From positions 1,550,001 to 1,614,000 of the forward strand of contig OX337231.1 in the NCBI GenBank assembly GCA_946965045.2: a DNA stretch of 64,000 nucleotides. Reading direction: 5' to 3'. The stretch's first letter is position 1. Each line of letters begins with the position of its first letter. The notes under the pieces are model-generated. The model ran no database searches. It was not told where the DNA came from and was given only the letters and a program-made list of their open reading frames with translations. Shown in pieces: positions 46,137-63,620 of this stretch. The translations under genes were made by a program, and so were the position numbers. This DNA is from Epithemia pelagica. Its lineage: Eukaryota; Protista; Bacillariophyta.

Positions 46137-47942
46137 CTACAAAGTGGCGATTGTTCCTGTGATTGCAATGAAGAAGCCAATAAGGACAAAACTCCAATCC
46201 AAAAGTTTCTCCCACCATGAAAGCCTTTCTCCAAACATTTGGAGATGCGCCCCGGCCGGTAAAATGATACTGACGCACATGGTACATATCATTCCCACCA
46301 AGGCACACAGATAGGAAAATGAGGGGACAAAGATGGAGACTGCCAACGCCATGCCGGTAAGAATAATCTTAACAGCTGCGGCAGCCACTGCCGTTGCGTT
46401 GTCCGAAGTCAAGTACGGCGCAATAATCTCTTCCACGCCAAGAGCCAAGGGAAACATGGTCAAGGTTGTCTTCGAGAAGGCCGTCAAAATCATGAGCCAC
46501 ACGAGCCCCTTCATCACAACGTTGGCCTGAATTACTTCTTCCATGGACAAGGTTACCTGGTCTGCCACCATGTTGCCGAACATGTAATATCCGGCCATTC
46601 CAACAGCCCAGCAGCATATCGTCACGGCAACGAATGTGAGGGTGGCCATTTGGTCAAACTTTTGAGGCTCCTTCATCGAGCGGTAGATGGAAGGGACAAT
46701 TGCATGGCCACTGAAGCAATAAGCCACCAGACCAAGTGCTAGTGTCATGCCCGAAGTCTCCCAGAGACTGTGGTGTGGCTTCTCATCTTCAATGCCTTTT
46801 GCTTCAGCCAATTCGGCTGTTAAATCTCCCTCCACCAAGGCAGCAACTATGACGGAGCAAACAACAGAAACTGTCGCCACAGTTCCAACCATGCTGAGGT
46901 AGGAGAGAAGTGTAGGAGTTCGGAGAAGAATTGCAGGGATCACCGATACAGAGGCAACAATGATCATGTGTATTGTCATCGAGACCATTGGGAAAATCTG
47001 ATGAAGGTGATCACCCATTGTCACAAAGAAAATGCATATGCAGGAGAAAAGCTCAAAATACAAGACAACGCTGAGAATGATGCTTCCGGCTCCGCCAAAC
47101 GAAACACGGGCAATTTCGGGAAACGAAGATGCGGGTGGGAGCATCCGCGCGGCTGGAATGGACCCTGGCTGGTGTGGAGATTTGTACGGCGAATCGTCAA
47201 AGAAGGAACTAGGTCGTGGATCCCCGTTCAATTCTTGCCCAATCAAAATTGTCGTCCTCCATGCCATAAAGGCAAACAAGAATACACAAACAGAGCCTCC
47301 AACCAGACCGGCGACTCGGAAGGCATATGGCAACCCCAGCAGTCCAACTCCCATCAGAATGTTGGCCAAGTTGAAGGCAGATTGTGTCACTGAAGATTTC
47401 TCTTCTTTAACGGGTCTGGCTTCCTTCGCTTTTCGCTGTTGCTCCACTGACGCAACTTCTCTTTGATAACCAGGACTCTTTGTGGCGTCGTACTTTTGCT
47501 CTGCAAGAATCTTGGCGCGATACTGTTTCGCCTTTCCGGCACGAGCCGCCTGTTGTGTCATGGTAGCAGGAAAATCGAGACTTTGTACCTTGGCAAGCCC
47601 CATGCCTTGAAACCGATCAAAATCGCTGTGCCGGTGAGACGGCAACACCTGTCGGATATCCGGAGAGTAGTAACCTCGGCGAAAATTCTGTCTTCTATTC
47701 AAGGCCAGCGGTGTTGAGCCTGGCCTCGGACTCTTGGTGTACATGTCGGCTTCTCGTTGAGATACAATGGGCGAGGCAAGGAGTCCAATCGAGCGCTCGA
47801 ACGTGGATGGCCATGGTTGAGACAACTCATCCCAGAGCCTTTGCGTCATATCACTTTCCGTTGAGGCCTGGCTAGTTGTCTCACTGCTGCTCTGGTTGAT
47901 GCCGTCGGAAAGGAGCGGCGCTTCTTCATTGTCGCCGCTCAT
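46137..47942 (-). CDS. Amino acid/auxin permease (Aa_trans, AVT1-like vacuolar type)
   Basis: AFNLANILMGVGLLGLPYAF, YCFSGHA, about 11 TM segments; N-terminal EEAPLL dileucine signal. Confidence 0.92.
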   Translation of the reverse strand: MSGDNEEAPLLSDGINQSSSETTSQASTESDMTQRLWDELSQPWPSTFERSIGLLASPIVSQREADMYTKSPRPGSTPLALNRRQNFRRGYYSPDIRQVLPSHRHSDFDRFQGMGLAKVQSLDFPATMTQQAARAGKAKQYRAKILAEQKYDATKSPGYQREVASVEQQRKAKEARPVKEEKSSVTQSAFNLANILMGVGLLGLPYAFRVAGLVGGSVCVFLFAFMAWRTTILIGQELNGDPRPSSFFDDSPYKSPHQPGSIPAARMLPPASSFPEIARVSFGGAGSIILSVVLYFELFSCICIFFVTMGDHLHQIFPMVSMTIHMIIVASVSVIPAILLRTPTLLSYLSMVGTVATVSVVCSVIVAALVEGDLTAELAEAKGIEDEKPHHSLWETSGMTLALGLVAYCFSGHAIVPSIYRSMKEPQKFDQMATLTFVAVTICCWAVGMAGYYMFGNMVADQVTLSMEEVIQANVVMKGLVWLMILTAFSKTTLTMFPLALGVEEIIAPYLTSDNATAVAAAAVKIILTGMALAVSIFVPSFSYLCALVGMICTMCVSIILPAGAHLQMFGERLSWWEKLLDWSFVLIGFFIAITGTIATL

Positions 47943-48534: not shown

Positions 48535-51500
48535 TTAGTTTGTATCCAGGCTTCTAACAATCAAATTGGCAGGAACCACAGCCACATCGCCATCATCGTA
48601 CAAAATTTGGTACTTTCCTTCTCCAAGAACACGAGATATCACCCCTGGAAATGTGCCGTCATTCATGGCCCTGGGGAAGTAGGCAATCACACGGTCGCCT
48701 TCGTTCCAGCCATTTCCCGGTGCACTGGACGACCTGCGGATCATTTCGTCTGGCAATCTATAAAAGACTTGTCCATCCTCCAGGGATTCGACATCGTAAG
48801 TCATGTCGTCCTCATGAAACTCAATGACTTGGCAATTCACAAAGGGTGCTTCTTCCATTTCTTTTGCGGCTACCTTCTCGCCCACGGTATACGGGAAAAA
48901 CCGTCGGACGCACTCTCGACACAGGTTCCTGTCTATATCATCGTCGGCATAAACAACATCCCAACCATTCATGTCGAGTGAAGTAGAAACTATAGTCCCT
49001 TTGTACCATTCTGTGCATGACAGACCAGCGGTTAGGAAGGAACGGAGATATCACATTAAGCAATTCAGTCCAGTCCACTTACCATCAAATTGCCCTTTGT
49101 ATTTCCCTTCGACAGAGTCGCCAACTTGAAGCCACGCGCCCGGAAAAGGCTCCCCGAGTCCCACTCGAGGAGGAATACCATTCCGTTCGGGCCGTTCAAG
49201 TTGCAATGTGACAATACGATTGACAGGAGAGAGAATCTTTGGACCCACCATTTTAGAGGTGTTGTTTGAATCGTTCTTCTTGCCATACGAAGTTCGCTTC
49301 AAAAGTTTGGATTTCATATCCTCCAAGTGGTCCATTGTATAAGAACTCAAACCTCTGGCGTTCCTCCAATATCCAAACTGCACTTCGGAAAAGAGAAAGT
49401 CGACCCACTTTACCACATGGCCCGCGACAGGGTTAACCTTGCTTCGTAGCGCCACGTCGCACTTGTTCATGGCCATGTCCGTCGTCATGACTCCCCATTC
49501 ATTTTCCTGGTTCTTGGTCAAGAAGCGTCCCCCGGTTTGCTCAACGCGTGATACCAATTCACTACATAGAGCGTTCTGGAGAGAAGAGCCCATGTTGTTG
49601 TAATTGACGTAAGAAGCATCCACTTCCTGTCTCCACAAGCTGTTTCCACCATGAGTGTAGTCCAGCACTTCTGTATAGCTGCCGAGATAGGAAGATTGGT
49701 ACTCGCTCGTGTCCACAACATCTTCATCATTGACAAGTGTCGAAGGAACATCGAGACGGTTCGAGTAATCGAAACGTTCCGAATTGAAGGACAACTCCTG
49801 TTTCAGATTGCGCGCCCAGGTTTGACGTTCCATACTCTGCAAATACAACCATGCACCAAATGCAATCACCGCATGTCCCAATACCATACGTCGAACCGGT
49901 CGATACAAAGATGTGCGAAAGCCACAGGCGCAATAAAAAACGTTGGCCACCAGCAAGAGTCCTGCAAACGCAGCGGCCATCACTCGATAGGATGTTTCTG
50001 CAAGTTGAAAGGTCTTGTCAATCATGGTGGTTCCAAAGACTTCCCAGGGGCTTGGGGTATCATCTTCATAATACTTGGTTGGTGATCCATACGTCGACTT
50101 GGTGCCTCGAATCACTTGAGGGATCCAGTCGAAGTCACCATTGAACAATCCGTCAAAAAAGTCATCACTGCTATATCCGAGTTCCTCCTGTGCAACTCGT
50201 TGGTGGGTCACAGTCCAAAAGTCCCATCCCCAGTTTCTATTAGGAGGCTTGAACAAACCCATGGATCTCAATTGACGAAAGGGTGCCTTCATGCGTCGTT
50301 CCGGATCGGCAAAATCCGACAATGTGTGTCCCCACTGCGACCAATGAAGAGAATAGGATCCGCCCGATCCCAGAATGCGTGTTTCGACGGCGTGTCGGTT
50401 CCATCGCGGACGAGGAGCAAAGGTCAAAATAAACAAGACGCGCTCCGGTCCATTGGGATCCATGTGTTCGGCTCCCATGTGCAGCGTTTGTTGGTTGACC
50501 AAGGCACCCCATCCAGCCGGCCAATTGTTTTGCGGCCCCGAGGCTTGGACGCCGTTTTCGGCACAAAATTCAAAGGCGCCCGTGGCGCACATGTGCGTCC
50601 CGGGACAAATCCTCGTGGCGCCCATTTCGGCCGTGGTGTTTTGGATTGGAATAAACAACGAGTAGGACGGAACGAAGTTGCGAGCAAATCTCTGAGCACT
50701 TCCTTGGGGGATGACATCGGCATGCATGTCTTGAGCAGTTGCTCCATACGCCGAGGTGATACACGTAAATTCAATGACTATCGATACAAGAACGGACAAG
50801 TAGCACGTACGGAACGTGAGACAAACTGCCTCACCAATTCATTGTCGAAAAGCTCCTCCCACTTACCAGCAGGATCGGGTCCGATAATTTCCTCCAAGGC
50901 AGCCACCAGCCGCTTGTTGCCAAGGACTTCTTTCAGTGCCTTGGGAATGGACGGGTCTTGGTCGACTTGCACTCCAAAACTGTATCGATTTTCATTGGCA
51001 ATAACCTTGATCATATCCTTGCCCATTCGGTTTTGTTTCACGACAAAATCTCGGACTTGTCGCGCCGTGTCGGGGCTCAGAACATTAGGGTAGAGTGTTG
51101 CGCCATGTGTCAACATTTTCCGTTTGGCATCCAAGGACGAATCTGTGGGCTGAAACACAAGCTCCGGATCATCCATGGAAAAGGCGGTTTGATGTTCCGG
51201 GTCACAGTGTCGTCCATAGTAGGTGTTTTCTTGCGCCCATCGCTCTTGAGACCATGTTTCTGCGTCATATTGTGGAATCCAGTATTGGTCTCGCATGCGC
51301 ACCAAAATAGCACCGATGCAAAGACCAGTGAAGCAAAGCAACACTGGCACGTCCAAGAGGACGGTTCGAAACAAGTGCCCGAGAACTTTCAAGACCATGT
51401 TGGTGTCTTTCTTGGTGCTCTTTTTGGAACGGTCGGAGAACAATGTCCTTGGTTTATTGCCTGTCGACGACGTCTTCTTGGTCTTTTCTCCATTGCCTTG

Positions 51501-51653
51501 AGCTTGTTGCGGTGTCCTCGACGGAGACGACAACATGACAAAGGGCGGATCACGACGACCTCGGGGCGACGAATGACGGTTGGGTGACTGTGTCACCGAT
51601 ATCGGTGCACTTTGAGCCGGCGAGGAGAGTGGAGGTGGTGTGACGAGGACCAT
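48535..51653 (-). CDS. PhyH-type dioxygenase + DUF6824-like + three Tudor-like domains, paralog 1 (exons 51653-50867, 50777-49083, 49010-48535)
   Basis: Two in-phase GTAAG introns; HAD...LH triad; GN..WR...GGRFL; YDDGD barrel. Confidence 0.85.
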
Positions 51654-52304
51654 GATATGATGGCGCCAGTCCAGTGTTAAGACAGTTTCTACTGGGATTT
51701 GGGTGTTGTCGTTGTTGTTCCAATGGTGGGTTGATCAAAAAAAAAATATGACTGCTTGTGGAGGAGGCAACGGTTGCTTCCGATCGTTTTTTCCTTTGAC
51801 CCAAATGCGAATGCCTCGAATCCTCTTGCTTTCTTGTCGGCGGGTTCGGCGTCCTTTGGCGCGCCAGATTCGTCGACGCATGCCGACGTTTACTATAGCC
51901 CTTCTGGGATTGAGTATGCTGAAATTTCTATTCATTCACGAAAAAGATACGATTGGCACCGGGCGAGCCAATTTTCTCCCTTCCCCTTCCCATCAATGCA
52001 GCACAGCCTATTGCTGCACACAACGGATCACCCTGGATGCACTTTTTTTGTCCAATCAATCCGAACCCAGTCCTTTTGGAAGGCCAAGGCTCCATGGCAA
52101 ATCCGAACTCGCGCCAGTTTTCAAACCGTATCCGTAATGAGGATGTGTATCTTGTGTGGCATGACATGACTTCTTCTCAAGAAGAAGCTGCTTCAGCAGG
52201 ACCAGATTCGGATTTCATACACTATCCGTGTTCGAACATACATTTGACTGCCGATCCAGCAAAGGGAGAATCTACCATTGTTTGTGTGGAGGTATCATTC
52301 AAAA

Positions 52305-55025
52305 ATGATTGTTCCAGTTCTTTGCGACCATGATCCCAAACGGACGGGTGGTTACGAGCGCCACTCTGCAAGCCACAACACCACCGTTTCCAAGTTTGTC
52401 CTACGGTGGATGCGCTTTGTTCTACTGGAATTTCCCGTGGTTCTTTCCTTTACGGGTGTGTTGATTCTTTACGGCATTGGAATCCTCCACGACAAGTATT
52501 ATGTGCCCCTCATGGATCGATCGACACGGACGGATGCCGATCTCCAACAAGAAATTACCTATTATCATCGTACCTGTACGGCCGCTGATATTACGACTCA
52601 AGATGCCGCAGACGTCTTGGCCAATCCTCGTGCCCCCGTGTCCCAAAGTGTCGATCAAATCATGACGCATGGAGCCCTGGTCATTCCCCAAATTTTGAAA
52701 CCCGAAACAGTACGAAACTTGCGGGACTATGCCGTCTATCGCAACCGTGTCATTCCCGAACACGAACAGTATCCCGTTTCGCAGGGTCACAACCGTATTT
52801 CCTTTGGATACGATGCCACCCAACATCCAGCCTTGGTGCAAGCCGTTCGAGAAGTAACACAGCACAAGTTCCTCAAGAAGCTTTTGACGGCTCTACTGGG
52901 TGATGTGGATCCTGCATCCACGGAAATCACCACCATTACTCAGTCCTATGGAGCACCAGAAATGTATTGGCATCCCGACACCAAACCAGATGGCAATGCC
53001 GTCAAATTTTCAAGAACCTACAGTCATTCCTTTTCCCTCTTTGTGTCCCTCCAGAATACCACCAAGGAAATGGGTGCCACCAATTTTTGTTTTGGTTCCC
53101 ACTTTTGTGCTGATGACGATTTGGAAGAATTGTGTGAAGGACATGCCGTGGGTTTGCATGCGGCCACACCCGAACAGGTCTTTCGTGCTGGAGATGGTGC
53201 CATGTTCAATCAACATACCTGGCACGCCGCACCGCCACACGTCGACCCTCATGCCCCTGACCGTATCATGTTTATCATGTCCTTTCTCGCAAGACCCAAG
53301 CCAAACCTCGATCAACGGCAATTGTCACGAGGCACCTACTTTCATCAAAAATGGAACATGTGGGGACACACCTGGAGCGACTTGGTGGATCCCCTCCGCT
53401 ACATGTCCAAACCCTTCTCCTATCTCAAGTGTCTGAGTCTCTGGTCTGCTAGTTCCAACTGGGGATACGACCTCGTGACCGCAACGTACATGAGATTTTC
53501 GAATGGCCAACTAGGTGCTGACTTGAGCAGACTGATTCACATATGGGACAATATTCTTGAGTGGCCGACCTGGTTGCATGGACGCAACCTGGAATATGAA
53601 GTGGAAGAGAAGGAAGCGTGGCAGACGTTTATTCAAGAAACCATTGAGATCTTGACGCACTACGCAGAGGTGTTGGCCCTTGCTTTACATGCATTTTATA
53701 TCCTCTTTTTATTCGGAATGTGGTTGTCAACAAGATCTACGCAAGATGAGAATCATTCCAGTCGGGCGTCAATTTTCGTCAGGTCTACTGCATTTCGCAT
53801 CTGTTGTACGCATGGGATTGTTGCGACTTTGTTCTTCCTTTCAATCGAATGGGTAGACAGGTCAGACTGGGCACAAGGCGTTACAAGTGGCCAAGTATTG
53901 AAGCGTCCCTTTCCACCATTTTCGGAACCCACGGAGGAAGAGGAGCAGATTGAAAAACGAAGGGGGTCTCTCACGACACTCCCAATGGGCAACGATGTCT
54001 TGTTTGTTGAACGGTACGATGCTCCTTGGTTGGGAGCCTATGAGCACTGGTTAGATTGGCATCGAGGAAACCGAATCTTTCTGGAAGCAGTACAGGAACA
54101 GGGTCCCTGGTTTGTGCGCCACAAAGACTTTCCAGCGCTGCAAACACACATTGTTGAAGAGTTGCAACGAGATGTCGCAAGGAATGGAGCTCGTTTCTTG
54201 AAGCAAGATGTCCGAACCGGAGATTGGAGGATACTGACAGGTATGGATCGGGTGGAGAGGTTACAAAACGAGCTGGTGTACAGTGGAAGGCCGCTTCTTC
54301 ACAGGATACAAGAGGTATCCAAGCGCATGATTGCTTTCTATCGATTCACAAGTTCACTCAGAGGTTCCGCCATGGCGAAAAAGTCTGTTATATTTCTTTC
54401 TCTTTTGCAAAAAAGACTCGTCCCCCTGTTTATTTCGCGCCGTGTACAAGACAACCGGCCAACCAACTCGGATCTTTCATCAATATCATCCGTCAAAGCA
54501 CCCAAGCCCATGTCTGCCTTTGCGTCACTGACAAGAAGAATCCTCCCTTCTCAAGTAAAAGCAGTCGCAGTCGGTACGCTGAAGTCTCGAAGCTTCGTTC
54601 GCCCATGTTTGCAAGAGGAGGAACCATTTCCTGTTGGAAGCAGCGTCTTGTTTAAGCAATTTCACGGGAAGCGTGGATGGGAATGGGTCGAGGCAGACGT
54701 TTTGGGTCATCATGAAATCGCAACAGAGGAGGAACATTACTCAGTATCACTGGAGACGGGCGAAACGGTTCCTGTTGCACTTCCAGAACGACTAAGAAAC
54801 TTTCAACCCATCACACAGGGAGATCTGGTCGAGGCGTGTTTTGAAGAGGGGTTGAAAGACTGCTACGAGGCGGAAGTGTTACGGGTAATTGCGGATGGCT
54901 CCGTCTGGGCGTTGCTCCTAGAATCTGACGAGGATGAAGAAGACTCTACGTATATGTTTTTCCAAGATGAGTATTACAAACCACTCAGCCAAGTTGCGTC
55001 TGACGAGCAAAAATGTCCTGAATAA
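52305..55025 (+). CDS. PhyH-type dioxygenase + DUF6824-like + two Tudor-like domains, paralog 2
   Basis: WHPD...WH triad, DRIMF; DVLF...WHRGN..F...GARFL; a further upstream exon is possible. Confidence 0.88.
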   Translation: MIVPVLCDHDPKRTGGYERHSASHNTTVSKFVLRWMRFVLLEFPVVLSFTGVLILYGIGILHDKYYVPLMDRSTRTDADLQQEITYYHRTCTAADITTQDAADVLANPRAPVSQSVDQIMTHGALVIPQILKPETVRNLRDYAVYRNRVIPEHEQYPVSQGHNRISFGYDATQHPALVQAVREVTQHKFLKKLLTALLGDVDPASTEITTITQSYGAPEMYWHPDTKPDGNAVKFSRTYSHSFSLFVSLQNTTKEMGATNFCFGSHFCADDDLEELCEGHAVGLHAATPEQVFRAGDGAMFNQHTWHAAPPHVDPHAPDRIMFIMSFLARPKPNLDQRQLSRGTYFHQKWNMWGHTWSDLVDPLRYMSKPFSYLKCLSLWSASSNWGYDLVTATYMRFSNGQLGADLSRLIHIWDNILEWPTWLHGRNLEYEVEEKEAWQTFIQETIEILTHYAEVLALALHAFYILFLFGMWLSTRSTQDENHSSRASIFVRSTAFRICCTHGIVATLFFLSIEWVDRSDWAQGVTSGQVLKRPFPPFSEPTEEEEQIEKRRGSLTTLPMGNDVLFVERYDAPWLGAYEHWLDWHRGNRIFLEAVQEQGPWFVRHKDFPALQTHIVEELQRDVARNGARFLKQDVRTGDWRILTGMDRVERLQNELVYSGRPLLHRIQEVSKRMIAFYRFTSSLRGSAMAKKSVIFLSLLQKRLVPLFISRRVQDNRPTNSDLSSISSVKAPKPMSAFASLTRRILPSQVKAVAVGTLKSRSFVRPCLQEEEPFPVGSSVLFKQFHGKRGWEWVEADVLGHHEIATEEEHYSVSLETGETVPVALPERLRNFQPITQGDLVEACFEEGLKDCYEAEVLRVIADGSVWALLLESDEDEEDSTYMFFQDEYYKPLSQVASDEQKCPE

Positions 55026-55203
55026 ACTTGAAGGGATGACTATAGCAGGCGAATGCCCATGCTCTTGTAGAGAACAACATATAGTAGTTTGTAGTTTATG
55101 ACAAACCCACTTTCGAAGTCACTGTGTCCTTATATGTCTGGTCTTCCGTCCGATGACGATGCGACGCACCTGCGTCCACTGATAGGTGATCCAAGCTCTA
55201 TGG

Positions 55204-57540
55204 TCAGTCTGGTAATAGAACGCTTCGGCAGTGTGGACAACGAAGTGCTACCGTTCCGTCACGACATGTCATTCGGTGTCTGCAGGAATGACAGGTGTAT
55301 AAGCAGATTCCACTAGGAAGCTTCCTCATTGCCGTCCCTCCCAACAGAATATCGGGATATGGACGCATTTGAGGTTCTTGATCCTGTGGATGAGTTTTCG
55401 AATGTCGCGAGCGTCGACTGCCGTCTACCCTGTCCCCGTCCGACCGTGATGTACTGACATTTGCTACCACTGGATGGTGGAAGAAGCGGTGACTTACTCT
55501 TTGCTTCGCAAAATACGGGTGTTTTGGTTCTATCGGGTGGAAAGTATGTTTACTGGGATCTTTGGACGGATTCTTCCATTCACATGCTCGAGGGACACGT
55601 TGAGGTTCAACACTGCTATTGCATGCGCCTTCATCAGTTTCTTGATGTTGTTGATCTGAGTCATTCCATGCTCCAACACCAGGGTTGACCAATGGCGTAG
55701 TTTCGGCTCGCTGCAGAAAAGTCATGTCGTGCTTTGTGGGGCTATCCGATCTCAAGCTTTCTGAAGAGACACGTCCCAAAGCAACCGGAGGCAAATGCAC
55801 TCCATCTAGGTCCCCACCCACGTGCCGACTAACCTTCGATTCCGATTCAAGGGCTTCGGTCCTTTCGACTCGTACTTGTTCTTGGAGCTGAAAGGGTGGG
55901 GAAACAACTTCCGAGTCTTCTTTAGGTCTCTGCGGAGTACTGTTACTTGAACGTCTCATTCTGCTGTTTTCGAACAAAATGGCCATGTGCCCACGTTTCA
56001 CGGTAGGCTCCCTTTCGCTATCGTAATCGCGATCACCATCCCTTCCAGAAGCTGCCAATTGATGGAATGGCGCCGCCGGTACTCTCGCGATTCCTTCACC
56101 TTCATCTAACGGGCGGCTTGCTCGACGTGGAGAAGATGACATTACATTGACCTTTCCCTTGAGACTTTTTGATGGGCTACGACTGCTGTGACTGCCCCTG
56201 GTGTCATAAGTTCGTGCCGTGCCTTTTGAACTACTTCCTTGAGAAGCATCTTGTAGCAAGGAGCGGCTATGCGCATTGGCAGCACTTTTACCTTTTGAAG
56301 GATTGGTACTATGATCAGACAATAGGGGCTTCGTTCGCCGACTGCCCATACTGCCTCTTCTTTCAGTGTTTGCCATTTTGGACGATTTCGCCACAGATCG
56401 GTTTCTCCTGTTCTGATCATCCAAAGACTGTTGAACAACTGGAGCTGACACGTGCGACTCAAGGCTGGTCGGAACAAGACTGTTTTTGGATTTTTTCTCC
56501 TTTGGTCTAGATTTGCGACTCGCTCTCAGTGGAGTGTCAATCCCATCGTCATTATCCTCTGATCGGCGACTGGTTCTAGAAGCAATAGATCTTCGCCGGG
56601 TTTGTCCATCAGGTGACGAAATCGTTCCATTGTCCACCGTACTTGATCGACTTTCAAGCTTGTTGGGTTTCATACTACCGCTCTCTTTCGTGTGATCCTC
56701 CTGGTCTGCGTTTATATTGCCATTCTTCAAACGGCCACCAGCCTGAACGTGTCCTGGTTGACCATGTATTCTATTCACTTTTGTTTCGTTTGGTTCAGTC
56801 TCTGGCTCTGACAATCGGTTTAACGTTGTGTCTTGCTCCTGATTGATTGGAGGCCGACCTGCATGTTCTGGCCAAGAAAGTTTACTTCGTGCGATCTGCG
56901 TTGGGGATTGAGTTTCGCCGTTTTCCTCAGCGTCGGAGATTGAGGCGGAAGCCGACTCCAAGAGTAAGTTTTGTTGAACAACTGTTGTTCCAATCAACGG
57001 AACATTACTGTGGCGCTCTTTTGGTGAACGAGAAAGCGACGAATCACTTTCCTCTCCCGAAGTTGTTCCATAGGCACTGCTGTCATCCCCGCCTGACATG
57101 GCACTAGCGTCTTCCTCCTTGCTTTTCTTTTTCGATTTTCGTTTGGAAGATGAATTCTTGCTCTTTTTCTTTTTACTCTTGGCCCTGGTCGAAGTCCTAT
57201 TGGAACGTTCCGACACATCGGACGCCCACATATCTTCCATCCTGCCATTTTCACCGAGTCGACGAATTCGAGTTTTTTGACCGACCATGAAACTAGGCAA
57301 ATCTCGATTGTAACCAAAGGCTCGATTGTCATCGTCGTCCCGGAGAGAAGCAGACGGCGCAGATTTCGCAAGTAGGCCACTTTGCTTGAGGCTGCTGCTT
57401 CTACTTTTCTTCTTTTTTGAACGATTGTTTTGCACATCGTCGTCTTCTTCGTCCCGAAGCTCCATCACCGCAGTTGGTTGCGAGGAGAGAGAGACGCCAC
57501 TTTGCTTCAGCGATGTAGGCGATACGACCAACGTTGCCAT
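55204..57540 (-). CDS. Low-complexity Ser/Arg/Lys-rich protein with a C-terminal LSD1-type zinc finger
   Basis: 778-aa ORF; CHSCRHRMTCRDGTVALRCPHC; poly-K NLS-like tracts. Confidence 0.75.
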   Translation of the reverse strand: MATLVVSPTSLKQSGVSLSSQPTAVMELRDEEDDDVQNNRSKKKKSRSSSLKQSGLLAKSAPSASLRDDDDNRAFGYNRDLPSFMVGQKTRIRRLGENGRMEDMWASDVSERSNRTSTRAKSKKKKSKNSSSKRKSKKKSKEEDASAMSGGDDSSAYGTTSGEESDSSLSRSPKERHSNVPLIGTTVVQQNLLLESASASISDAEENGETQSPTQIARSKLSWPEHAGRPPINQEQDTTLNRLSEPETEPNETKVNRIHGQPGHVQAGGRLKNGNINADQEDHTKESGSMKPNKLESRSSTVDNGTISSPDGQTRRRSIASRTSRRSEDNDDGIDTPLRASRKSRPKEKKSKNSLVPTSLESHVSAPVVQQSLDDQNRRNRSVAKSSKMANTERRGSMGSRRTKPLLSDHSTNPSKGKSAANAHSRSLLQDASQGSSSKGTARTYDTRGSHSSRSPSKSLKGKVNVMSSSPRRASRPLDEGEGIARVPAAPFHQLAASGRDGDRDYDSEREPTVKRGHMAILFENSRMRRSSNSTPQRPKEDSEVVSPPFQLQEQVRVERTEALESESKVSRHVGGDLDGVHLPPVALGRVSSESLRSDSPTKHDMTFLQRAETTPLVNPGVGAWNDSDQQHQETDEGACNSSVEPQRVPRACEWKNPSKDPSKHTFHPIEPKHPYFAKQRVSHRFFHHPVVANVSTSRSDGDRVDGSRRSRHSKTHPQDQEPQMRPYPDILLGGTAMRKLPSGICLYTCHSCRHRMTCRDGTVALRCPHCRSVLLPD

Positions 57541-58437
57541 TGAGAGAGAGCAGAGTTATCGAACAAGTAGCTCAAGCTCGCTTCTCTCAACCCCCCTCCA
57601 CTGCCAAAAACAATATTATCAACCAAAAAACTGCAGAGTCACAGTGGCCCCACGTAACCGTAACGTCTTGGAACAACGATGGGTCTGCCGATTGTGCTGA
57701 TGGGTAGATCGTCCACTCATGTATGATAAGTGGTCCAATAAACAAGCCTGCAGCGTTCTGTCAGTAATTGACGCTGCAGTTTCTTCGCGGTCTAAGCTCT
57801 TGAGAGATGATTAATATGCTGGAAGATGTTGTTGTTGTGTGGTGCGTAAACTGGTTTGAACGAGTGTGGAATGGCGCTCCCTTTCTCTCTTGCCCTTGTT
57901 TGTTGATGCGAAGTAAGCGCCCGATGGGGGGATTAGGGGCAATCATCATGGGCCCAGAGTGCATCTGTGAATGTGTTAGAACGAAGGCGGGTGACGGACG
58001 AGCGTGGAACAATGGGCTATTTTCAATATTAGGATGGCTTGCGCGTGACCAGTCTGTTGCTGTAGTTGCTATTCATCCGGGCTTAATTGGTGGACAATTG
58101 CTGTCATGTATCCTGATGGGGTAGGTACGTGTAGGGCGTTCACACAAAATGAACAATCGCCCCGATTCGGAAAATGGAACATAGGGAATGGCCGGGATTA
58201 AAATGTGTGCAATTGGCAACTGGTATTCTCGAGTAGAGCTTTTCGCAAAGATGGATTTCCTCTAGCTAGATGTAAGAATTTAGAACGTACGACTAGGACC
58301 AATATCATTGATCATGTTATGCAAACAACCAACCAACTCAGAAATGATAGAGCCTTTGCTTTCGATGTCGACGAGGCCTTGTCATATCTATGAATTTTCA
58401 TAATGGTCCACACTGTAAAAGACTTGGTCATGTTTCA

Positions 58438-61008
58438 TCAATCTTCATCTGGCAATACATACGCATAGGGTGGGACATAGTACTCCGCTGGATGTTTTCG
58501 CGCATCAAAGTCCCCATCCTTGTATGCAATAGCGGCAGATCCATCAGGCATGACATGCACAGCGATTCCCTCGTAGCAGTCTTCCAGTTCGCCATCGGTT
58601 GAGAAACAACCCTGCACAACATCTCCCTCTTCAACTGGTCTATAATGTTCCAACTCGTGAAAGGGAACATGGACCTGGATCTCACCCGTTTCCAGCGCTA
58701 CTGTTGATTCTTGTTTGTTTTTGTTTAGTGCCACGATGTCACCTCGGTACCATGCCTTGTTCGTGTTTCCGTGTCTATCCTCCTCTGTCAAATAGGCCCA
58801 AACAGGAGCTCCCAACCGGAAGTCATCCTGTCCACCTGGCTGAATAGGCCAACCTGCCCTCCATGTCAACAATTGAAGAGACGAACGTGACTCCATCCGG
58901 ATTACTGGTAATTTCCAACGACGGAAACTCACTGGCGTACTTGTTTCCGAAACAGAGGTACGCACCATGCTGCCATCTTGGACTTGCAGTCGTAGGGGGA
59001 TTCCAGCTAGCTTCATTCGTAATCTCCAGGCAAAGAGCGCTGCCTTCCGCGCCAGTGCCGTCGATCTCAATACGGTCCCAAATCGAAGCAGATCCATGGA
59101 GCGATCCAATCGTGTCCGAAGGGCCTCAAGTACGGGCAAGGCCGCACAAGCCAATTCCAACTGTACCGTCTGTTGATTGTCTTGGACCGTTTGAACTCTC
59201 CAATCGCCCGTGCGGTAATTTTGTTGTAAGAAACGCCCTTGATTTTCCTCCACCACTTTGTAAACGGCCGCGTCTACCAGGGCGGACGACAACGTCCGAC
59301 GTTGAGACGGGGGAGTGGATGCTGCCTTTAACGAGTATGATGGTGCCAATTCACTAATGACTTGCTGAAAACGGCGATTCCCGGGATGTCCATCCAACCA
59401 ACGTTCATAAGCTCCCAACCAGGGTGCATCAAACCGTGTGCCAAGCAACACATCCAAAGTGCTCGGAAATGTGGTAGGTCCCGAGGACACAACACCAACC
59501 AACTCTTCCTCCATGCTTCTGCGGGCAGCTGGAGGAAAAGGGCGCATAAGAGACTTTCCCTTGAGTGCATTTTGTGCCCAGGCACTGCATTGGATTTTGT
59601 ACAGGGCACACCCAATCAACAGAAGGACCATTCCATTCGCCACAAGATACCGTGTGAGAGCTTTGCGAAACAAGGATTCACCTGGTGTCGCTTGCTCGTT
59701 GGACTTTGCATTACGCAAGGTGGCCGAAAAAAGAAACAGAAGGACGAAATACATGGCATGGACTCCGNNNNNNNNNNNNNNNNNNNNNNNNNNNNNNNNN
59801 NNNNNNNNNNNNNNNNNNNNNNNNNNNNNNNNNNNNNNNNNNNNNNNNNNNNNNNNNNNNNNNNNNNNNNNNNNNNNNNNNNNNNNNNNNNNNNNNNNNN
59901 NNNNNNNNNNNNNNNNNNNNNNNNNNNNNNNNNNNNNNNNNNNNNNNNNNNNNNNNNNNNNNNNNNNGGTGCGGAGCCCCACGATGCCACACGTGTTGAT
60001 TGAGCAGGGCGGCATCCCCGGCCGGAAGGTCTCCTCGGGCTGATAGGCAGCATGCAAACCACGTCCACCCATGGCATTGTCACAAACATCGTACAAATCG
60101 TTGGCGCAGTAATGCGTTCCAGGACAGATCTCTGTGGCTCCCATCTTCCTTGTCGTGTTTTGTAACGGCAGAAACAAGGAGTAAGAATGACTGTAGGTTC
60201 GAGCAAATTTCAAGGCATTTCCATCTTCCTTGGTATCACTGTGCCATGCTTGTTCCGGTGCACCATAATATTGCGTAATTGTGGTGATTTCCGTCGATGC
60301 CGGATCGTGATCTCCCAAGATTTGTTGAAGCAATTGTCGAAGAAAGCGATTGTGTGTCACTTCTCGAACGGCTTGAATCAAGGCTGGGTGTTCGGTGGCA
60401 TCGTATCCAAAGGAAATGCGTTTGTGACCCTGGGAAACGGGATACTGTTCGTGTTCGGGAATGACACGGTTGCGGTACACGGCATACTCCCGCAATTTTT
60501 GCACCGTTTCGGGTTTCAAAATTTGCGGCAGCAAGACGACACCATGTGTCATGAGCACGTCTTGGGCCATGTCCACTCCGGCCGAAAACAAGGAAGAAGA
60601 GGATCCTTCTTCCACTGTTGGCGTGGTGGGGACAATTAATTCAGTCAAGTTGCGAGTCGTAATATCCTGGGCCGTACAACGTCGATGATAATAAGTGAAT
60701 TCCCGGTGCAAATCCTTGTTGGTTCGAGTCGATCGATCCATGAGAGGAACATAGTAGACTTGATAAATGGATTGCAAACCATACGTTGCTGCACAGGTAC
60801 CCACTAATGCGACCAAGGGGATATCCACCAGACCAACGCGACAGAGAAACCAGAACCATGACAGGACCACAGGACCCCCCTTGGACGAGAAGGATGACGA
60901 ACCAGTCTTTCTACTCGAAAGTGGTGGAGATGCAGGTGTACCTTTAGGGTTTTTCTGGACCACTTTTTCCCGAGGAGACCGTTGCGTTTGATTGTCAGCA
61001 AACATCAT
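58438..61008 (-). CDS. PhyH-type dioxygenase + DUF6824-like + two Tudor-like domains, paralog 3 (apparent 1-bp frameshift near 60017, spans an assembly gap)
   Basis: WHSD; DVLLG..HPGN..F..GRFL; close similarity to paralog 2. Confidence 0.8.
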   Translation of the reverse strand: MMFADNQTQRSPREKVVQKNPKGTPASPPLSSRKTGSSSFSSKGGPVVLSWFWFLCRVGLVDIPLVALVGTCAATYGLQSIYQVYYVPLMDRSTRTNKDLHREFTYYHRRCTAQDITTRNLTELIVPTTPTVEEGSSSSLFSAGVDMAQDVLMTHGVVLLPQILKPETVQKLREYAVYRNRVIPEHEQYPVSQGHKRISFGYDATEHPALIQAVREVTHNRFLRQLLQQILGDHDPASTEITTITQYYGAPEQAWHSDTKEDGNALKFARTYSHSYSLFLPLQNTTRKMGATEICPGTHYCANDLYDVCDNAMGGRGLHAAYQPEETFRPGMPPCSINTCGIVGLRTXXXXXXXXXXXXXXXXXXXXXXXXXXXXXXXXXXXXXXXXXXXXXXXXXXXXXXXXXXXXXXXXXXXGVHAMYFVLLFLFSATLRNAKSNEQATPGESLFRKALTRYLVANGMVLLLIGCALYKIQCSAWAQNALKGKSLMRPFPPAARRSMEEELVGVVSSGPTTFPSTLDVLLGTRFDAPWLGAYERWLDGHPGNRRFQQVISELAPSYSLKAASTPPSQRRTLSSALVDAAVYKVVEENQGRFLQQNYRTGDWRVQTVQDNQQTVQLELACAALPVLEALRTRLDRSMDLLRFGTVLRSTALARKAALFAWRLRMKLAGIPLRLQVQDGSMVRTSVSETSTPVSFRRWKLPVIRMESRSSLQLLTWRAGWPIQPGGQDDFRLGAPVWAYLTEEDRHGNTNKAWYRGDIVALNKNKQESTVALETGEIQVHVPFHELEHYRPVEEGDVVQGCFSTDGELEDCYEGIAVHVMPDGSAAIAYKDGDFDARKHPAEYYVPPYAYVLPDED
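59768..59967. other. Assembly gap (200 N)
   Basis: Run of N. Confidence 0.99.
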
Positions 61009-61616
61009 GATGCCTGTTTATTGACGATCACTCTCTCTTTCTCTTTGGCATTGACCCACAAATTCGTTCTTTCTTGTTGTTCTCTCGCAACAATGACAAA
61101 AGATCGGTATCATCATCAGAAACGCGAATCATGTTTTCCCACCAAAAACGATTCCCGTGAAGCGTCTATACGCCTACACTACGTAGGATTAGGATTCAGA
61201 TTGAGGGGTGGGGAAATGAAGTAGAATTTATTGGGGGTCGAAATTTGGGGCACTGAAACAGATGTTTCTGAGCGACTGCAAATTTGATGCCGAGGAGGAG
61301 ACGCGCCAAACGCCGAGCGAGGGCCGACTTTGAACTGGGCGCAAGGTGATGCGACACCTGCCTGAACAACCACCACCACGAAGACCACAAAGGAAAGGAA
61401 AGGAGCGGACGACTTGTGTCTCCTGCCTTTTGTTTTGTCGGTTTTTGAGGAAGAAAGAAGAACACATTTTCTTTCGACAAGCCCTTTCCGTCGCCGTCGT
61501 GTTGTTGTGGAGACGTGACTGCTCGTCCTGTCCAACAAGCCGCACATTTTACAAAGACTCCCAAATCCCAACTGGTGGTATCTCTCCGTCATTATCGAGC
61601 GTGAAACTCCCACACC

Positions 61617-63620
61617 ATGGCCAGTGGTCGGTATCCTCCTTGTCCGCGCTCCAGATTCCTCTTCCACAATCCCGCAAAGCCTGCCCTCCAAAGCAGCAGT
61701 GGACCACCCATTCTTTGTTCGGGACCAAGATGGTTTCATGACCGAGCCGTATCCGTGGTGGTGTTGATACTTTGTTTGGCAAGTCTGTTCTCGTCCTATT
61801 GGGCCATGCAAATTTTGGAACAAAGCGAACATGCATCTTCCTCCTTCACCCGTCTCATCTTCCCCACTAATGATGAGGGTGGGAGTTTCGAAGTACCAAC
61901 GTTCAGATTGGAACAAAGGGACTTGGAACGAATGAACTCAAAACGTTCTTTTACCAGCAAACCTGAACCCGAGGAGCTACTGGAGACGGGGCCGACAAGA
62001 GACGAGAGTGGAACAACCCAAGATGAGCCACACTTTCTTTCCGACGACCAGAAAGAGCCCGTTGCGGCCATTGTTCGTAACCATGGAGCCCTGTCCCATA
62101 CTATCAATCAAACTCTATTATTTCCCATAATTAATGTGGGTCTTCCCAAAAGTGGTGAAGACACCTTGTGGAATTTCTTTCACAAATTGGGCTTGGTCAC
62201 ACAACATGGGTGTGGCCATGTGCGACGACCCCGAAACACATGCATTGCCATGGGACCGTGTATCTATGCCAATGTCCAAAACGAACGACCAGCCTTTACC
62301 AATTGCTCCAAACAAATCAAGATTGTGGATCCCAATGAACGAGAACTGCAAGTCTACACACAATTGGATGGACAACGTTATTTAAGTCATCAGAAACCAG
62401 TCAAAACGGGTCAATATGTACCTCAAATCCAATACTTGAACGAATTGTATAGTTTTCAACCCAATGCAACATGGATCCTTCCCTTGCATTTGCCTCAACA
62501 CTGGGCCTTTACGGTTTCCAGACATCACATGCTTCGCAAACGATTGTGGAACGAAGGGTTGGTGGCAAAACATCACTCGTCGGTACCAGTCCGCAATCGG
62601 TCCATTTTTCAAGAGGAACCAAACGAACTCGATGCACTCGACCATTGGGAACGCTATTACCATCAACACACGACACGAATACGGGATTTTGTCCAAGATC
62701 ATCCAAGTCTTCGATTGATTGAAGTGCAATATCGCTTCCAACGTGCACCCTTTGATTTGATGGATCGTCTGGGTCTGCCACTTTCAGAGACTATGCGAGC
62801 ATTCCAAGAACGAGGGGATTCCGACCAATCTGTTCAATTGTCTGACTTTTGGGAATGCCTTAGCAACGAATGCGACACGTGGACAGAAAACCTGCAATCG
62901 ATTGACGCGATTCGGAATGGAAAAACGTCGGCCACGGGACAACCTCCGCTCAAACTAGAGACGCCAATTTTTGTGGTGGGCATGCCCAAGAGTGGGACAA
63001 CCAGCGTATTCAACTTTTTCTCGTGCGCAGGTGTTGTATCTCAACACTACTGTTGTTGTGGCGATGTTTCCGATCATCGGCCTTGTTATTCACCCATCAT
63101 GGCGGATTGTATCATGGATAACAAGAAAAATGGACGCCCGATGCTAGAAAACTGTGGTGATTATGACGTGTACGGAGAATTGGATGGGGAACAGATATAC
63201 AGCGTAAAGAATGCTACGAATGGAATGGAAGAGAAACTCGGGGGACATTTCTTGCCCCAAGTATTTGAACTAGATTGGATTCACAAAGAATATCCCAATG
63301 CAACCTTGATCCTGCCGCTACGAAACTCTAAGACATGGGCTGCCTCCGTCAGCCGGTGGTTCAATATGAGGCATCGAATCCAAAATGAATACATATACAT
63401 GAACCGGTCGGAGGAAGTTGTCAATGTTGGCAATCCCCTTGTTAACTTATACGAGAAACACACGACCAATATTGTCAAGTTTGTTCAAGAACACCCGTCG
63501 CATAAACTCATTTTGTTCGAAATCACCGATCCCAACGCGGGAAAGGTTCTGGCGGATGCATCCGGCCTTCCCGAACATTGTTGGGGCCATCACAACCAAA
63601 ACACAGAGCGAAAGTACTAG
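61617..63620 (+). CDS. Type II membrane protein with two tandem sulfotransferase-like P-loop domains
   Basis: Single TM segment; INVGLPKSGED and FVVGMPKSGTT; both domains show YTQLDG/YGELDG, PQ and W..SV. Confidence 0.82.
   Translation: MASGRYPPCPRSRFLFHNPAKPALQSSSGPPILCSGPRWFHDRAVSVVVLILCLASLFSSYWAMQILEQSEHASSSFTRLIFPTNDEGGSFEVPTFRLEQRDLERMNSKRSFTSKPEPEELLETGPTRDESGTTQDEPHFLSDDQKEPVAAIVRNHGALSHTINQTLLFPIINVGLPKSGEDTLWNFFHKLGLVTQHGCGHVRRPRNTCIAMGPCIYANVQNERPAFTNCSKQIKIVDPNERELQVYTQLDGQRYLSHQKPVKTGQYVPQIQYLNELYSFQPNATWILPLHLPQHWAFTVSRHHMLRKRLWNEGLVAKHHSSVPVRNRSIFQEEPNELDALDHWERYYHQHTTRIRDFVQDHPSLRLIEVQYRFQRAPFDLMDRLGLPLSETMRAFQERGDSDQSVQLSDFWECLSNECDTWTENLQSIDAIRNGKTSATGQPPLKLETPIFVVGMPKSGTTSVFNFFSCAGVVSQHYCCCGDVSDHRPCYSPIMADCIMDNKKNGRPMLENCGDYDVYGELDGEQIYSVKNATNGMEEKLGGHFLPQVFELDWIHKEYPNATLILPLRNSKTWAASVSRWFNMRHRIQNEYIYMNRSEEVVNVGNPLVNLYEKHTTNIVKFVQEHPSHKLILFEITDPNAGKVLADASGLPEHCWGHHNQNTERKY

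Follow-up and report, generated by a model that had tools for sequence, protein, structure and literature searches.

Three related genes of the diatom Epithemia pelagica combine a PhyH-type oxygenase with DUF6824-like and Tudor-like domains in predicted membrane proteins

Three related genes with one architecture

We analysed a stretch of 64,000 nucleotides of the diatom Epithemia pelagica (contig OX337231.1, positions 1,550,001 to 1,614,000; hereafter the window), in which positions 48535-61008 are occupied by three related genes, named A, B and C below, with one common architecture. Genes A and B are both complete and encode, in this order, a basic N-terminal tail, a first transmembrane segment (TM1), a PhyH-type oxygenase domain, a hairpin made of two further transmembrane segments (TM2 and TM3), a DUF6824-like domain and Tudor barrels, the latter numbering three in A and two each in B and C. 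A preliminary description drawn from the nucleotide letters had proposed three paralogues of a single architecture at this place, and gene models, a Pfam scan and alignments all agree with it.

Gene A lies on the reverse strand (48535..51653) and encodes 985 amino acids (aa), its exons being located at 51653-50867, 50777-49083 and 49010-48538 and its stop codon at 48535-48537. The junctions of its two introns could be read directly (intron 1, 50866..50778, GTAAGT...AG, 89 nt; intron 2, 49082..49011, GTAAGT...CAG, 72 nt); both introns are of the GT..AG type, and the spliced product is in frame over all 985 codons. Gene B, on the forward strand (52305..55025), is a complete single-exon gene: the listed open reading frame (ORF) begins at a TTG codon at 52278, and the first ATG, at 52305, yields a protein of 906 aa. 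Gene C (61008..58438, reverse strand) is interrupted by an assembly gap and is best described in two parts, an N-terminal one (59968..61008), which carries the tail, TM1 and the PhyH-like domain up to its distal His, and a C-terminal one (58438..59767), which carries the end of TM2, TM3, the DUF6824-like domain and Tudor barrels 1 and 2.

The alignment between the spliced product of A and B covers 862 aa with an identity of 27% (E=1e-85), and the two fall into different deep clades of the family tree, which indicates that A is no recent copy of B or C. The N-terminal part of C, for its part, is 61% identical to B. A second assembly (L001; ENA ERZ21939226), 98% identical to the window, served as reference for estimating the ratio of nonsynonymous to synonymous polymorphism (pN/pS), which reaches 0.16 for A, 0.52 for B and 0.13 for the N-terminal part of C, all three values resting on small underlying counts. 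These ratios point to purifying selection on A and on the N-terminal part of C; gene A looks constrained, and gene B looks relaxed, its cage residues (see below) being lost. The L001 copy of B also lacks one base at window position 54660, that is, position 12355 of L001 (GCAATTTCAC versus GCAA-CTCAC), and its product ends at 829 aa; this loss is either an error of the L001 assembly or a truncated allele.

Conservation of the oxygenase domain

The PhyH-type Fe(II)/2-oxoglutarate (2OG) oxygenase domain of B spans 52488..53606 (forward strand) and is recognised by a fold match and by its invariant catalytic residues, with H223-x-D225 at 52971-52979, a Cys cluster at 53088-53135 and H307..R320 at 53223-53264. 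The catalytic core of the PhyH-like domain of A is located at 50440..50724 (reverse strand), with HAD at 50716-50724, the CPGTHMC..C cluster at 50563-50607 and the stretch from the distal His to the Arg at 50440-50481. In C, HSD is found at 60235-60243 and the Cys cluster at 60082-60126 (reverse strand).

The iron triad that had been read from the letters is confirmed in all three genes (A, HAD; B, HPD; C, HSD), with a distal His in every case. It is also near-universal in a set of 195 relatives: in the numbering of B, H223 and D225 are found in 192 of 192 sequences and H307 and R320 in 194 of 194. All four residues are likewise invariant in an alignment of 44 full-length relatives (hereafter the 44 relatives). 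The 2OG-binding Arg, initially described as kept wherever sequenced, is indeed present in A and B; that of C lies in the assembly gap and is seen only in L001. The conserved Cys noted around CPGTH.C also stand, as a C-x5-C-x8-C pattern plus one N-terminal Cys is near-invariant among the 195 relatives, the four residues concerned (C91, C262, C268 and C277) being kept in 185-194 of them.

With Pfam PhyH (PF05721; cut-off 22 bits), B scores 19 bits and the N-terminal part of C 26.1 bits; the domain of A is split by an intron and has no whole-domain score. An AlphaFold model of B was obtained with a mean predicted local distance difference test (pLDDT) of 83.6 and a predicted template modelling score (pTM) of 0.82. 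When its N-terminal domain was compared with solved structures using Foldseek, the best match was AsqJ (5.3e-10), followed by KanJ, FtmOx1, PrhA and EasH, with a target TM-score of about 0.6 over about 240 columns; a sequence-profile search of the PDB with the PhyH domain retrieved the same enzymes weakly (E=0.002-0.03). The residues that a hydroxylase-type Fe(II)/2OG oxygenase needs for catalysis are evidently kept throughout the family, and by its residues the domain would be catalytically competent.

DUF6824-like domain and Tudor barrels

Pfam scores at this locus are mostly below the curated cut-offs (27 bits for DUF6824, 31 bits for Tudor_5 and 22 bits for PhyH), and the domain calls therefore rest on profile and fold evidence. 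Among the domains initially announced, the DUF6824 domain of A (49489..49722, reverse strand; PF20710, 39.2 bits) and the PhyH domain of C pass their cut-offs. The PhyH domain of B, the DUF6824-like domains of B (53994..54233, forward strand, with the motifs DVL..H.GN..GARFL; 20 bits) and of C (59194-59454, reverse strand; 25.8 bits) and the Tudor_5 match of A remain below theirs. Within the DUF6824-like domain, D564, R570, H586, N589, R630, L632, Q634 and W641 are invariant in the 44 relatives, and by shape this part of B resembles, though weakly, a diatom DUF6824 cluster with 326 members. Our literature search on DUF6824 returned no paper.

The three Tudor-like barrels of A are located at 48931-49131 (spanning intron 2), 48751-48891 and 48559-48708 on the reverse strand; they match Tudor_5 (27.5 bits) and SGF29_Tudor, both below cut-off, and follow the sequence pattern of the family. 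The two barrels of B (54627-54794 and 54813-54977, forward strand) are identified by profile and fold matches and have degenerate cage positions, and those of C (Tudor 1, 58651-58821; Tudor 2, 58477-58632; reverse strand) by family motifs. The preliminary description had counted two to three Tudor/Agenet-like barrels per gene, which is supported at the levels of both profile and fold. A profile of the C-terminal part of the family matches the double Tudor of KDM4A (E=7e-7) over both barrels, and tandem Agenet proteins are matched as well. The C-terminal part of B, folded separately (AlphaFold; pLDDT 82.5), retrieves with Foldseek tandem Agenet domains, SGF29 and UHRF1 (E=1e-4 to 1e-3) as well as SETDB1, and in a VIA structure comparison its match to a single Tudor domain reaches a Z of 8.6, with a root-mean-square deviation of 1.5 A over 56 residues. 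These matches indicate that the C-terminal barrels are true tandem Tudor/Agenet domains.

The aromatic cage expected in such barrels was recovered in part. In the alignment columns of the 44 relatives, the positions of barrel 2 equivalent to W967 and Y973 of KDM4A are aromatic in 80% and 91% of sequences, respectively, the position preceding an Asp-Asp-Gly motif is aromatic in 98%, and the two Asp occur in 95% and 91%. Barrel 3 of A fits this cage pattern fully, and barrel 2 of C keeps the three aromatic positions, with a Lys replacing the first Asp. A cage thus appears to be conserved family-wide in barrel 2, as judged from alignment columns. The expectation did not hold for the cages of B itself, nor fully for barrel 1, the cage columns of which are less regular (59-95% aromatic). 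Cage loss in B accords with its relaxed pN/pS (0.52, versus 0.16 for A and 0.13 for the N-terminal part of C). We also considered two Cys of barrel 2, Cys845 and Cys853, as a disulfide signature, as 54 sequences have both, 43 have neither and none has only one of them. Despite this perfect co-occurrence, the pattern corresponds to a single change on the tree and carries little weight; the pair was thus dropped and is not counted as evidence.

Predicted membrane topology

In A, TM1 (51300..51371, reverse strand; residues 95-118) has the features of a signal-anchor and is preceded by a Lys/Arg-rich tail of 94 residues, and TM2 (49927-49983) and TM3 (49831-49887) are separated by a basic loop. 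In B, AlphaFold helices and charge counts place TM1 at 52431..52487, TM2 at 53670-53726 and TM3 at 53790-53846 (forward strand), with an Arg-rich loop between the last two. In C, TM1 is located at 60775-60846 and TM3 at 59602-59658 (reverse strand). The hydrophobicity of TM1 and TM2 is clear in every relative.

We counted charges in 15-residue flanks and summed them over the 44 relatives. Lys and Arg outnumber Asp and Glu by 123 to 13 before TM1 and by 191 to 16 in the TM2-TM3 loop, the counts being 70 to 71 after TM1, 68 to 82 before TM2 and 95 to 41 after TM3; expressed as net charge per sequence, the N-terminal flank has +2.5, the loop +4.0 and the flank following TM3 +1.2. The Lys/Arg-rich character initially attributed to the tail and the loop is therefore a property of the family. 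Such a charge pattern, with neutral flanks on the PhyH side, is what one would expect if the N-terminus and the TM2-TM3 loop were cytosolic and the PhyH domain and the C-terminus lay outside, which is the topology we predict. In addition, AlphaFold folds residues 435-478 and 482-519 of B into a confident antiparallel hairpin (pLDDT 82-97), and a TM2/TM3 hairpin of this kind would place both soluble parts on one side. The preliminary description had argued from the positive-inside rule that the oxygenase and the Tudor barrels are both lumenal. On the basis of the charges and the modelled hairpin, we uphold this argument as a prediction and favour, as the best-supported topology, one with the oxygenase and the Tudor barrels both on the non-cytosolic side.

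A large family so far found in diatoms

At E<=0.001, an exhaustive profile search retrieved 4106 proteins; with the threshold set at E<=1e-30, it gave 730 representatives. The best 150 family matches all have E-values below 1e-136, and nearly all of them are full length. Word-index searches, whether started from B or from its family alignment, yielded only about 55 clusters and thus understated a family for which the exhaustive search gave hundreds of members. Every named member (named members being a minority of the matches) is a diatom, from 11 genera that include both centrics and pennates: the raphid pennates Phaeodactylum, Fistulifera, Mayamaea, Nitzschia, Epithemia, Seminavis, Pseudo-nitzschia and Entomoneis, the polar centrics Attheya and Chaetoceros, and the radial centric Dactyliosolen. 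Bacillariophyta is also the label of the nearest ESM Atlas cluster. Checking the taxonomic distribution, as the preliminary description had advised, thus revealed diatoms at every named match, rather than an architecture common in non-silicifying lineages. These data point to a family that is large, expanded, old and so far diatom-only.

Examples of members are Phaeodactylum XP_002179312.1 / B7FXC1, Seminavis Sro1975_g308800, and Chaetoceros CTEN210_04669 and CTEN210_04672. The last two form a cluster in Chaetoceros tenuissimus, and Epithemia clementina carries another one, composed of ACA910_008578 (the orthologue of A, 66% identity) and of 008579 and 008581, which are B-like. As deep paralogues are clustered in these two species too, their tandem arrangement is probably old. 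Source databases label members as 'hypothetical', 'PWWP domain-containing', 'Tudor domain-containing' or 'phytanoyl-CoA dioxygenase family'. The architecture had initially been presented as not previously described, and we likewise found no paper on the family when searching the literature, including searches with the accessions of Phaeodactylum and Fistulifera members and with phytanoyl-CoA dioxygenase combined with diatom and silaffin. We conclude that the architecture is real, conserved and uncharacterised, and that it represents a new form of reader-coupled 2OG oxygenase.

Giant proteins of 7637 aa (P0110), 3101 aa (P0177) and 2087 aa (P0196) contain 18-21 copies of the same YDDG-type Tudor barrel; for one of them, the source database gives the label of an EF-hand protein. 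We considered these proteins as a hint of extracellular use of the barrel and rejected the idea because they have no signal peptides.

Gene C, a frame slip and an assembly gap

Each half of gene C reads well on its own. The C-terminal part is a single open frame of 442 codons in the window, with which the public sequencing runs concur, and it keeps the family motifs. In the N-terminal part, a one-base slip is found at 60023..60024, where all four runs (X1-X4) insert a G behind 60023 that is absent from the window. As a consequence, the homologous reading AGDAALLNQHVWHRGAPH, located directly 5' of the gap in gene direction, sits in another frame of the window sequence than the upstream part; with the G restored, C reads ..TFRAGDAALLNQHVWHRGAPH. 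As four public runs insert the G and L001 reads the stretch around 60023 in a single frame, we interpret the frameshift as an assembly slip, and C therefore retains its distal His. The gap itself (59768..59967) consists of 200 N and covers the end of the PhyH domain, including the 2OG Arg, and a stretch reaching into TM2. A window ORF spanning the gap was rejected, as it depends on the arbitrary length of 200 N and on the wrong frame after the slip.

L001 is the only ungapped copy, with 374 nt in place of the window gap, and this stretch holds the 2OG arginine (..SLERVVFVMSF..) and the remainder of the PhyH domain. In this region, however, the C frame of L001 breaks after ..YMRFSNAQLGGDLTR(stop), the continuation ..KKTAWTTFIEETIAILLQYLKQLTIRVHAMYF.. 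into TM2 being in another frame, and about 22-25 family-conserved residues (consensus RFxPxLDxLxxPxWLxG) are missing. Given this frame break and these missing residues, gene C may be split or decaying. We rejected an intron as a means of rescuing the frame, since the homologous sequence is directly adjacent, so that a GT..AG intron of plausible size would not fit; in addition, the RNA-like run X2 and the DNA-like runs share one 885-nt contig, which also counts against an intron in C. The second half of C in L001 exhibits two further lesions that are absent from the runs, namely an extra C at about 59605 and a 114-nt deletion taking out the GRFL core of the DUF6824 domain.

Contigs from the runs extend into the gap by 388 nt from the right and by 81-300 nt from the left, where two allelic 136-nt contigs are found at the edge. 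Contig-length arithmetic with 31-mer overlaps, as opposed to sequence, suggests that the true gap is about 65 nt longer than L001, which is approximately the size of the missing segment. Taken together, both halves of C are open and family-like, at a locus that is heterozygous and hard to assemble, and continuity across the gap is putative. Run X2 covers genic parts only and in this respect resembles RNA; if it is RNA, C would be transcribed from about 58295 to 61038. The intergenic segment 57886-57976, between C and the neighbouring Ser/Lys-rich gene, shows several small indels that differ among the window, L001 and the runs, indicating that the locus is polymorphic.

Neighbouring genes

Between B and C, on the reverse strand (55204-57540), lies an unrelated gene for a 778-aa protein very rich in Ser, Lys and Arg, with runs such as KKKKSRSSS and SKKKKSKNSSSKRKSKKKSKEE and a CxxC..CxxC zinc-ribbon-like tail at its end; the gene is conserved in L001, and its product shows neither a Pfam match nor an obvious signal peptide. 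Next to C, a forward-strand gene (61617-63620) encodes a 667-aa protein in which a hydrophobic anchor at the N-terminus is combined with a sulfotransferase domain (PF17784, 40.7 bits, cut-off 22.8; PF13469, 39.9 bits); its N-terminal half may contain a second, degenerate sulfotransferase copy, and the protein looks like a type II enzyme of the Golgi kind. Directly upstream of gene A, an amino-acid transporter gene (46137-47942, reverse strand; PF01490, 193.8 bits) has a pN/pS of 0.06 relative to L001.

Discussion

We tentatively propose that A, B and C encode three-pass membrane proteins in which the PhyH oxygenase and the DUF6824/Tudor region are both non-cytosolic and the Tudor module docks a substrate for hydroxylation, a reading that we regard as quite possible, though short of probable. 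The basic cytosolic tail and TM1 would act as a type II signal-anchor, putting the oxygenase on the non-cytosolic side of the membrane, in the lumen of the endoplasmic reticulum (ER), the Golgi or a vesicle. The TM2-loop-TM3 hairpin, with its Arg-rich cytosolic loop, would then bring the chain back to the same side, where the DUF6824-like domain and the tandem Tudor module would be found. The latter might dock the enzyme on a methylated or otherwise cationic ammonium ligand, possibly a Lys or Arg of a protein or else a polyamine, and the oxygenase would hydroxylate either the docked substrate or a neighbouring site. The data establish the gene structures, the domain identities, the conservation of catalytic and cage residues, the charge bias, and the size and diatom range of the family, whereas we infer the topology and compartment, the reader-oxygenase coupling and the kind of substrate.

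Several observations weigh against this proposal, some of them by favouring other ones. The absence of Thalassiosirales from the named matches is one such point, of little weight as named matches are a minority. Another is that, to our knowledge, no lumenal Tudor domain is known: all Tudor proteins we know of are cytosolic or nuclear, and Tudor and DUF6824 domains are elsewhere known or suspected only in cytosolic or nuclear proteins. These domains would stay in their usual compartments if the topology were inverted, with the oxygenase and the DUF6824/Tudor region cytosolic or nucleoplasmic and the N-terminal tail and loop lumenal. The proteins would then be reader-guided oxygenases tethered to the ER or the nuclear envelope and would have methylated histones or other proteins of the nucleus or cytosol as substrates, which would make them a PhyH-based analogue of KDM4A. 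The barrels do match KDM4A best, followed by the chromatin readers AGDP, SGF29, UHRF1, SETDB1 and 53BP1; membrane-tethered Tudor proteins exist, the LBR Tudor being among the matches; and the giant multi-Tudor proteins built from the same barrel type lack signal peptides. An inverted topology would nevertheless make the two most basic segments lumenal, against a charge bias that is consistent in the 44 relatives, and would require the translocation of N-terminal tails of up to about 260 residues, and we consider it unlikely. The usual compartments would also be respected by a two-pass protein in which TM3 does not span the membrane, with a lumenal oxygenase and a cytosolic or nucleoplasmic DUF6824/Tudor region that could, for example, anchor or regulate the enzyme from the cytosol. 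TM3 is indeed the weakest of the three segments, with a Kyte-Doolittle mean of 1.64 (about half of the sequences pass 1.6) and, on an approximate biological scale, a value roughly 2 kcal/mol worse than those of TM1 and TM2, and it is followed by a flank that is still net positive. We regard such a two-pass arrangement as quite unlikely, as TM2 and TM3 are confidently modelled as an antiparallel hairpin and the loop is far more basic than the flank following TM3. In addition, TM3 has a low hydrophobic moment (0.18), which makes it unlike a surface helix, and a mean hydrophobicity of 0.56, and it lies above the transmembrane-like line of Eisenberg in 41 of the 44 relatives.

The three-pass proposal can also be questioned on its substrate. 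The nearest solved structures (AsqJ, KanJ, FtmOx1, PrhA, EasH and SptF) are all enzymes acting on small molecules, we know of no established protein hydroxylase of the PhyH type, and the cages of barrel 1 and of B are poor, B being the sole case among the 44 relatives with a Leu at position 871 and lacking the YDDG motif. The family could thus consist of small-molecule or lipid oxygenases, with a C-terminal module used only for oligomerisation, scaffolding or localisation and no methyl reading involved. However, the three aromatics and the Asp-Asp-Gly motif kept by barrel 2 in 80-98% of members are hard to explain without a ligand, and the fusion of oxygenase and reader has been maintained across the whole diatom range and in hundreds of paralogues; such a purely small-molecule role therefore seems rather doubtful to us.

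If the three-pass, reader-guided reading is retained, the chemistry of the diatom cell wall provides a possible context. Diatom silica proteins contain unusual lysine derivatives, among them dimethyl-lysine and trimethyl-delta-hydroxylysine (PMC3820600). The enzymes responsible for these derivatives are not known. In addition, diatom BacSETs, which are SET methyltransferases of the chromatin type, have been proposed to modify proteins of cell-wall formation and long-chain polyamines, and are reported to be co-expressed with cell-wall genes (work of 2020, cited in PMC11151724 and bioRxiv 10.1101/2020.11.23.393678). As a hypothesis, a role in silaffin modification would fit both this lysine chemistry and the SET methyltransferase proposal. 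In its full form, the family would be the missing lumenal hydroxylase of diatom cell-wall chemistry, its Tudor cage reading di- or trimethyl-lysine, or else methylated polyamine chains, on silaffin-like precursors that SET enzymes of the lumen had methylated beforehand, and its PhyH domain adding the delta-hydroxyl of trimethyl-hydroxylysine or a related hydroxyl; we regard this form as a long shot. The main text of the silica-proteome preprint mentions neither Tudor nor dioxygenase, and our literature search combining hydroxylysine with hydroxylase and silaffin found nothing. The family is a concrete and testable candidate, as it is diatom-wide and expanded and joins an oxygenase to a module resembling methyl-ammonium readers, both predicted to be lumenal from charge bias. 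If the silica hypothesis were true, the family would include the first Tudor reader at work within the secretory pathway, and biosilica proteins would be modified through a cascade guided by a reader. Silica apart, a lumenal Tudor domain would be a first, and a reader-guided PhyH-type enzyme would represent a new targeting mode for this class of oxygenases.

Comparison with known systems

Each part of the architecture has counterparts in known systems. With PhyH enzymes such as PHYH, AsqJ, KanJ, FtmOx1, PrhA and EctD-like proteins, the diatom domain shares a double-stranded beta-helix, the HxD..H triad, the GAT..PG(S/T)H motif and an Arg 13 residues past the distal His. Known members are soluble proteins of about 280-310 residues acting on small molecules, whereas the diatom domain is about 390 residues long, is flanked by transmembrane segments, and adds four family-specific invariant Cys as well as the fused DUF6824 and Tudor domains. 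Canonical diatom DUF6824 proteins (PF20710) have the DVL..H.GN..GRFL motifs in common with the family, in which the segment from DVL to H.GN is longer and the domains of B and C score below the Pfam cut-off. BacSETs offer another parallel, being a likewise diatom-specific, chromatin-type module proposed to act on cell-wall-formation proteins and polyamines, and a lysine methyltransferase of this kind would make a mark readable by Tudor domains. They are, however, writers rather than a reader joined to an oxygenase, and have no domain in common with the diatom family, so that any link between the two is conjecture.

The predicted layout, with a cytosolic tail, a signal-anchor and a lumenal 2OG oxygenase, resembles that of plant type II prolyl 4-hydroxylases, AspH and PLOD, which are membrane-anchored lumenal 2OG oxygenases modifying secretory proteins. 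These enzymes belong to another oxygenase family (P4Hc or Asp/Arg hydroxylase) and have neither a hairpin nor a reader domain. The system closest in logic is KDM4A/JMJD2A, in which a JmjC-type 2OG oxygenase and a double Tudor reader are found in one chain: its barrels are the best sequence-profile match of the diatom ones, and the positions of its W967 and Y973 are aromatic in the diatom family, although the position of F932 is a Leu in B and C. The KDM4A barrels are interdigitated, whereas the diatom barrels are modelled side by side, and the diatom protein is, by prediction, membrane-bound and lumen-facing. As its catalytic domain is of the PhyH type and not JmjC, it is related by descent neither to KDM4A nor to the type II lumenal hydroxylases, the two systems that it otherwise resembles in logic and in layout.

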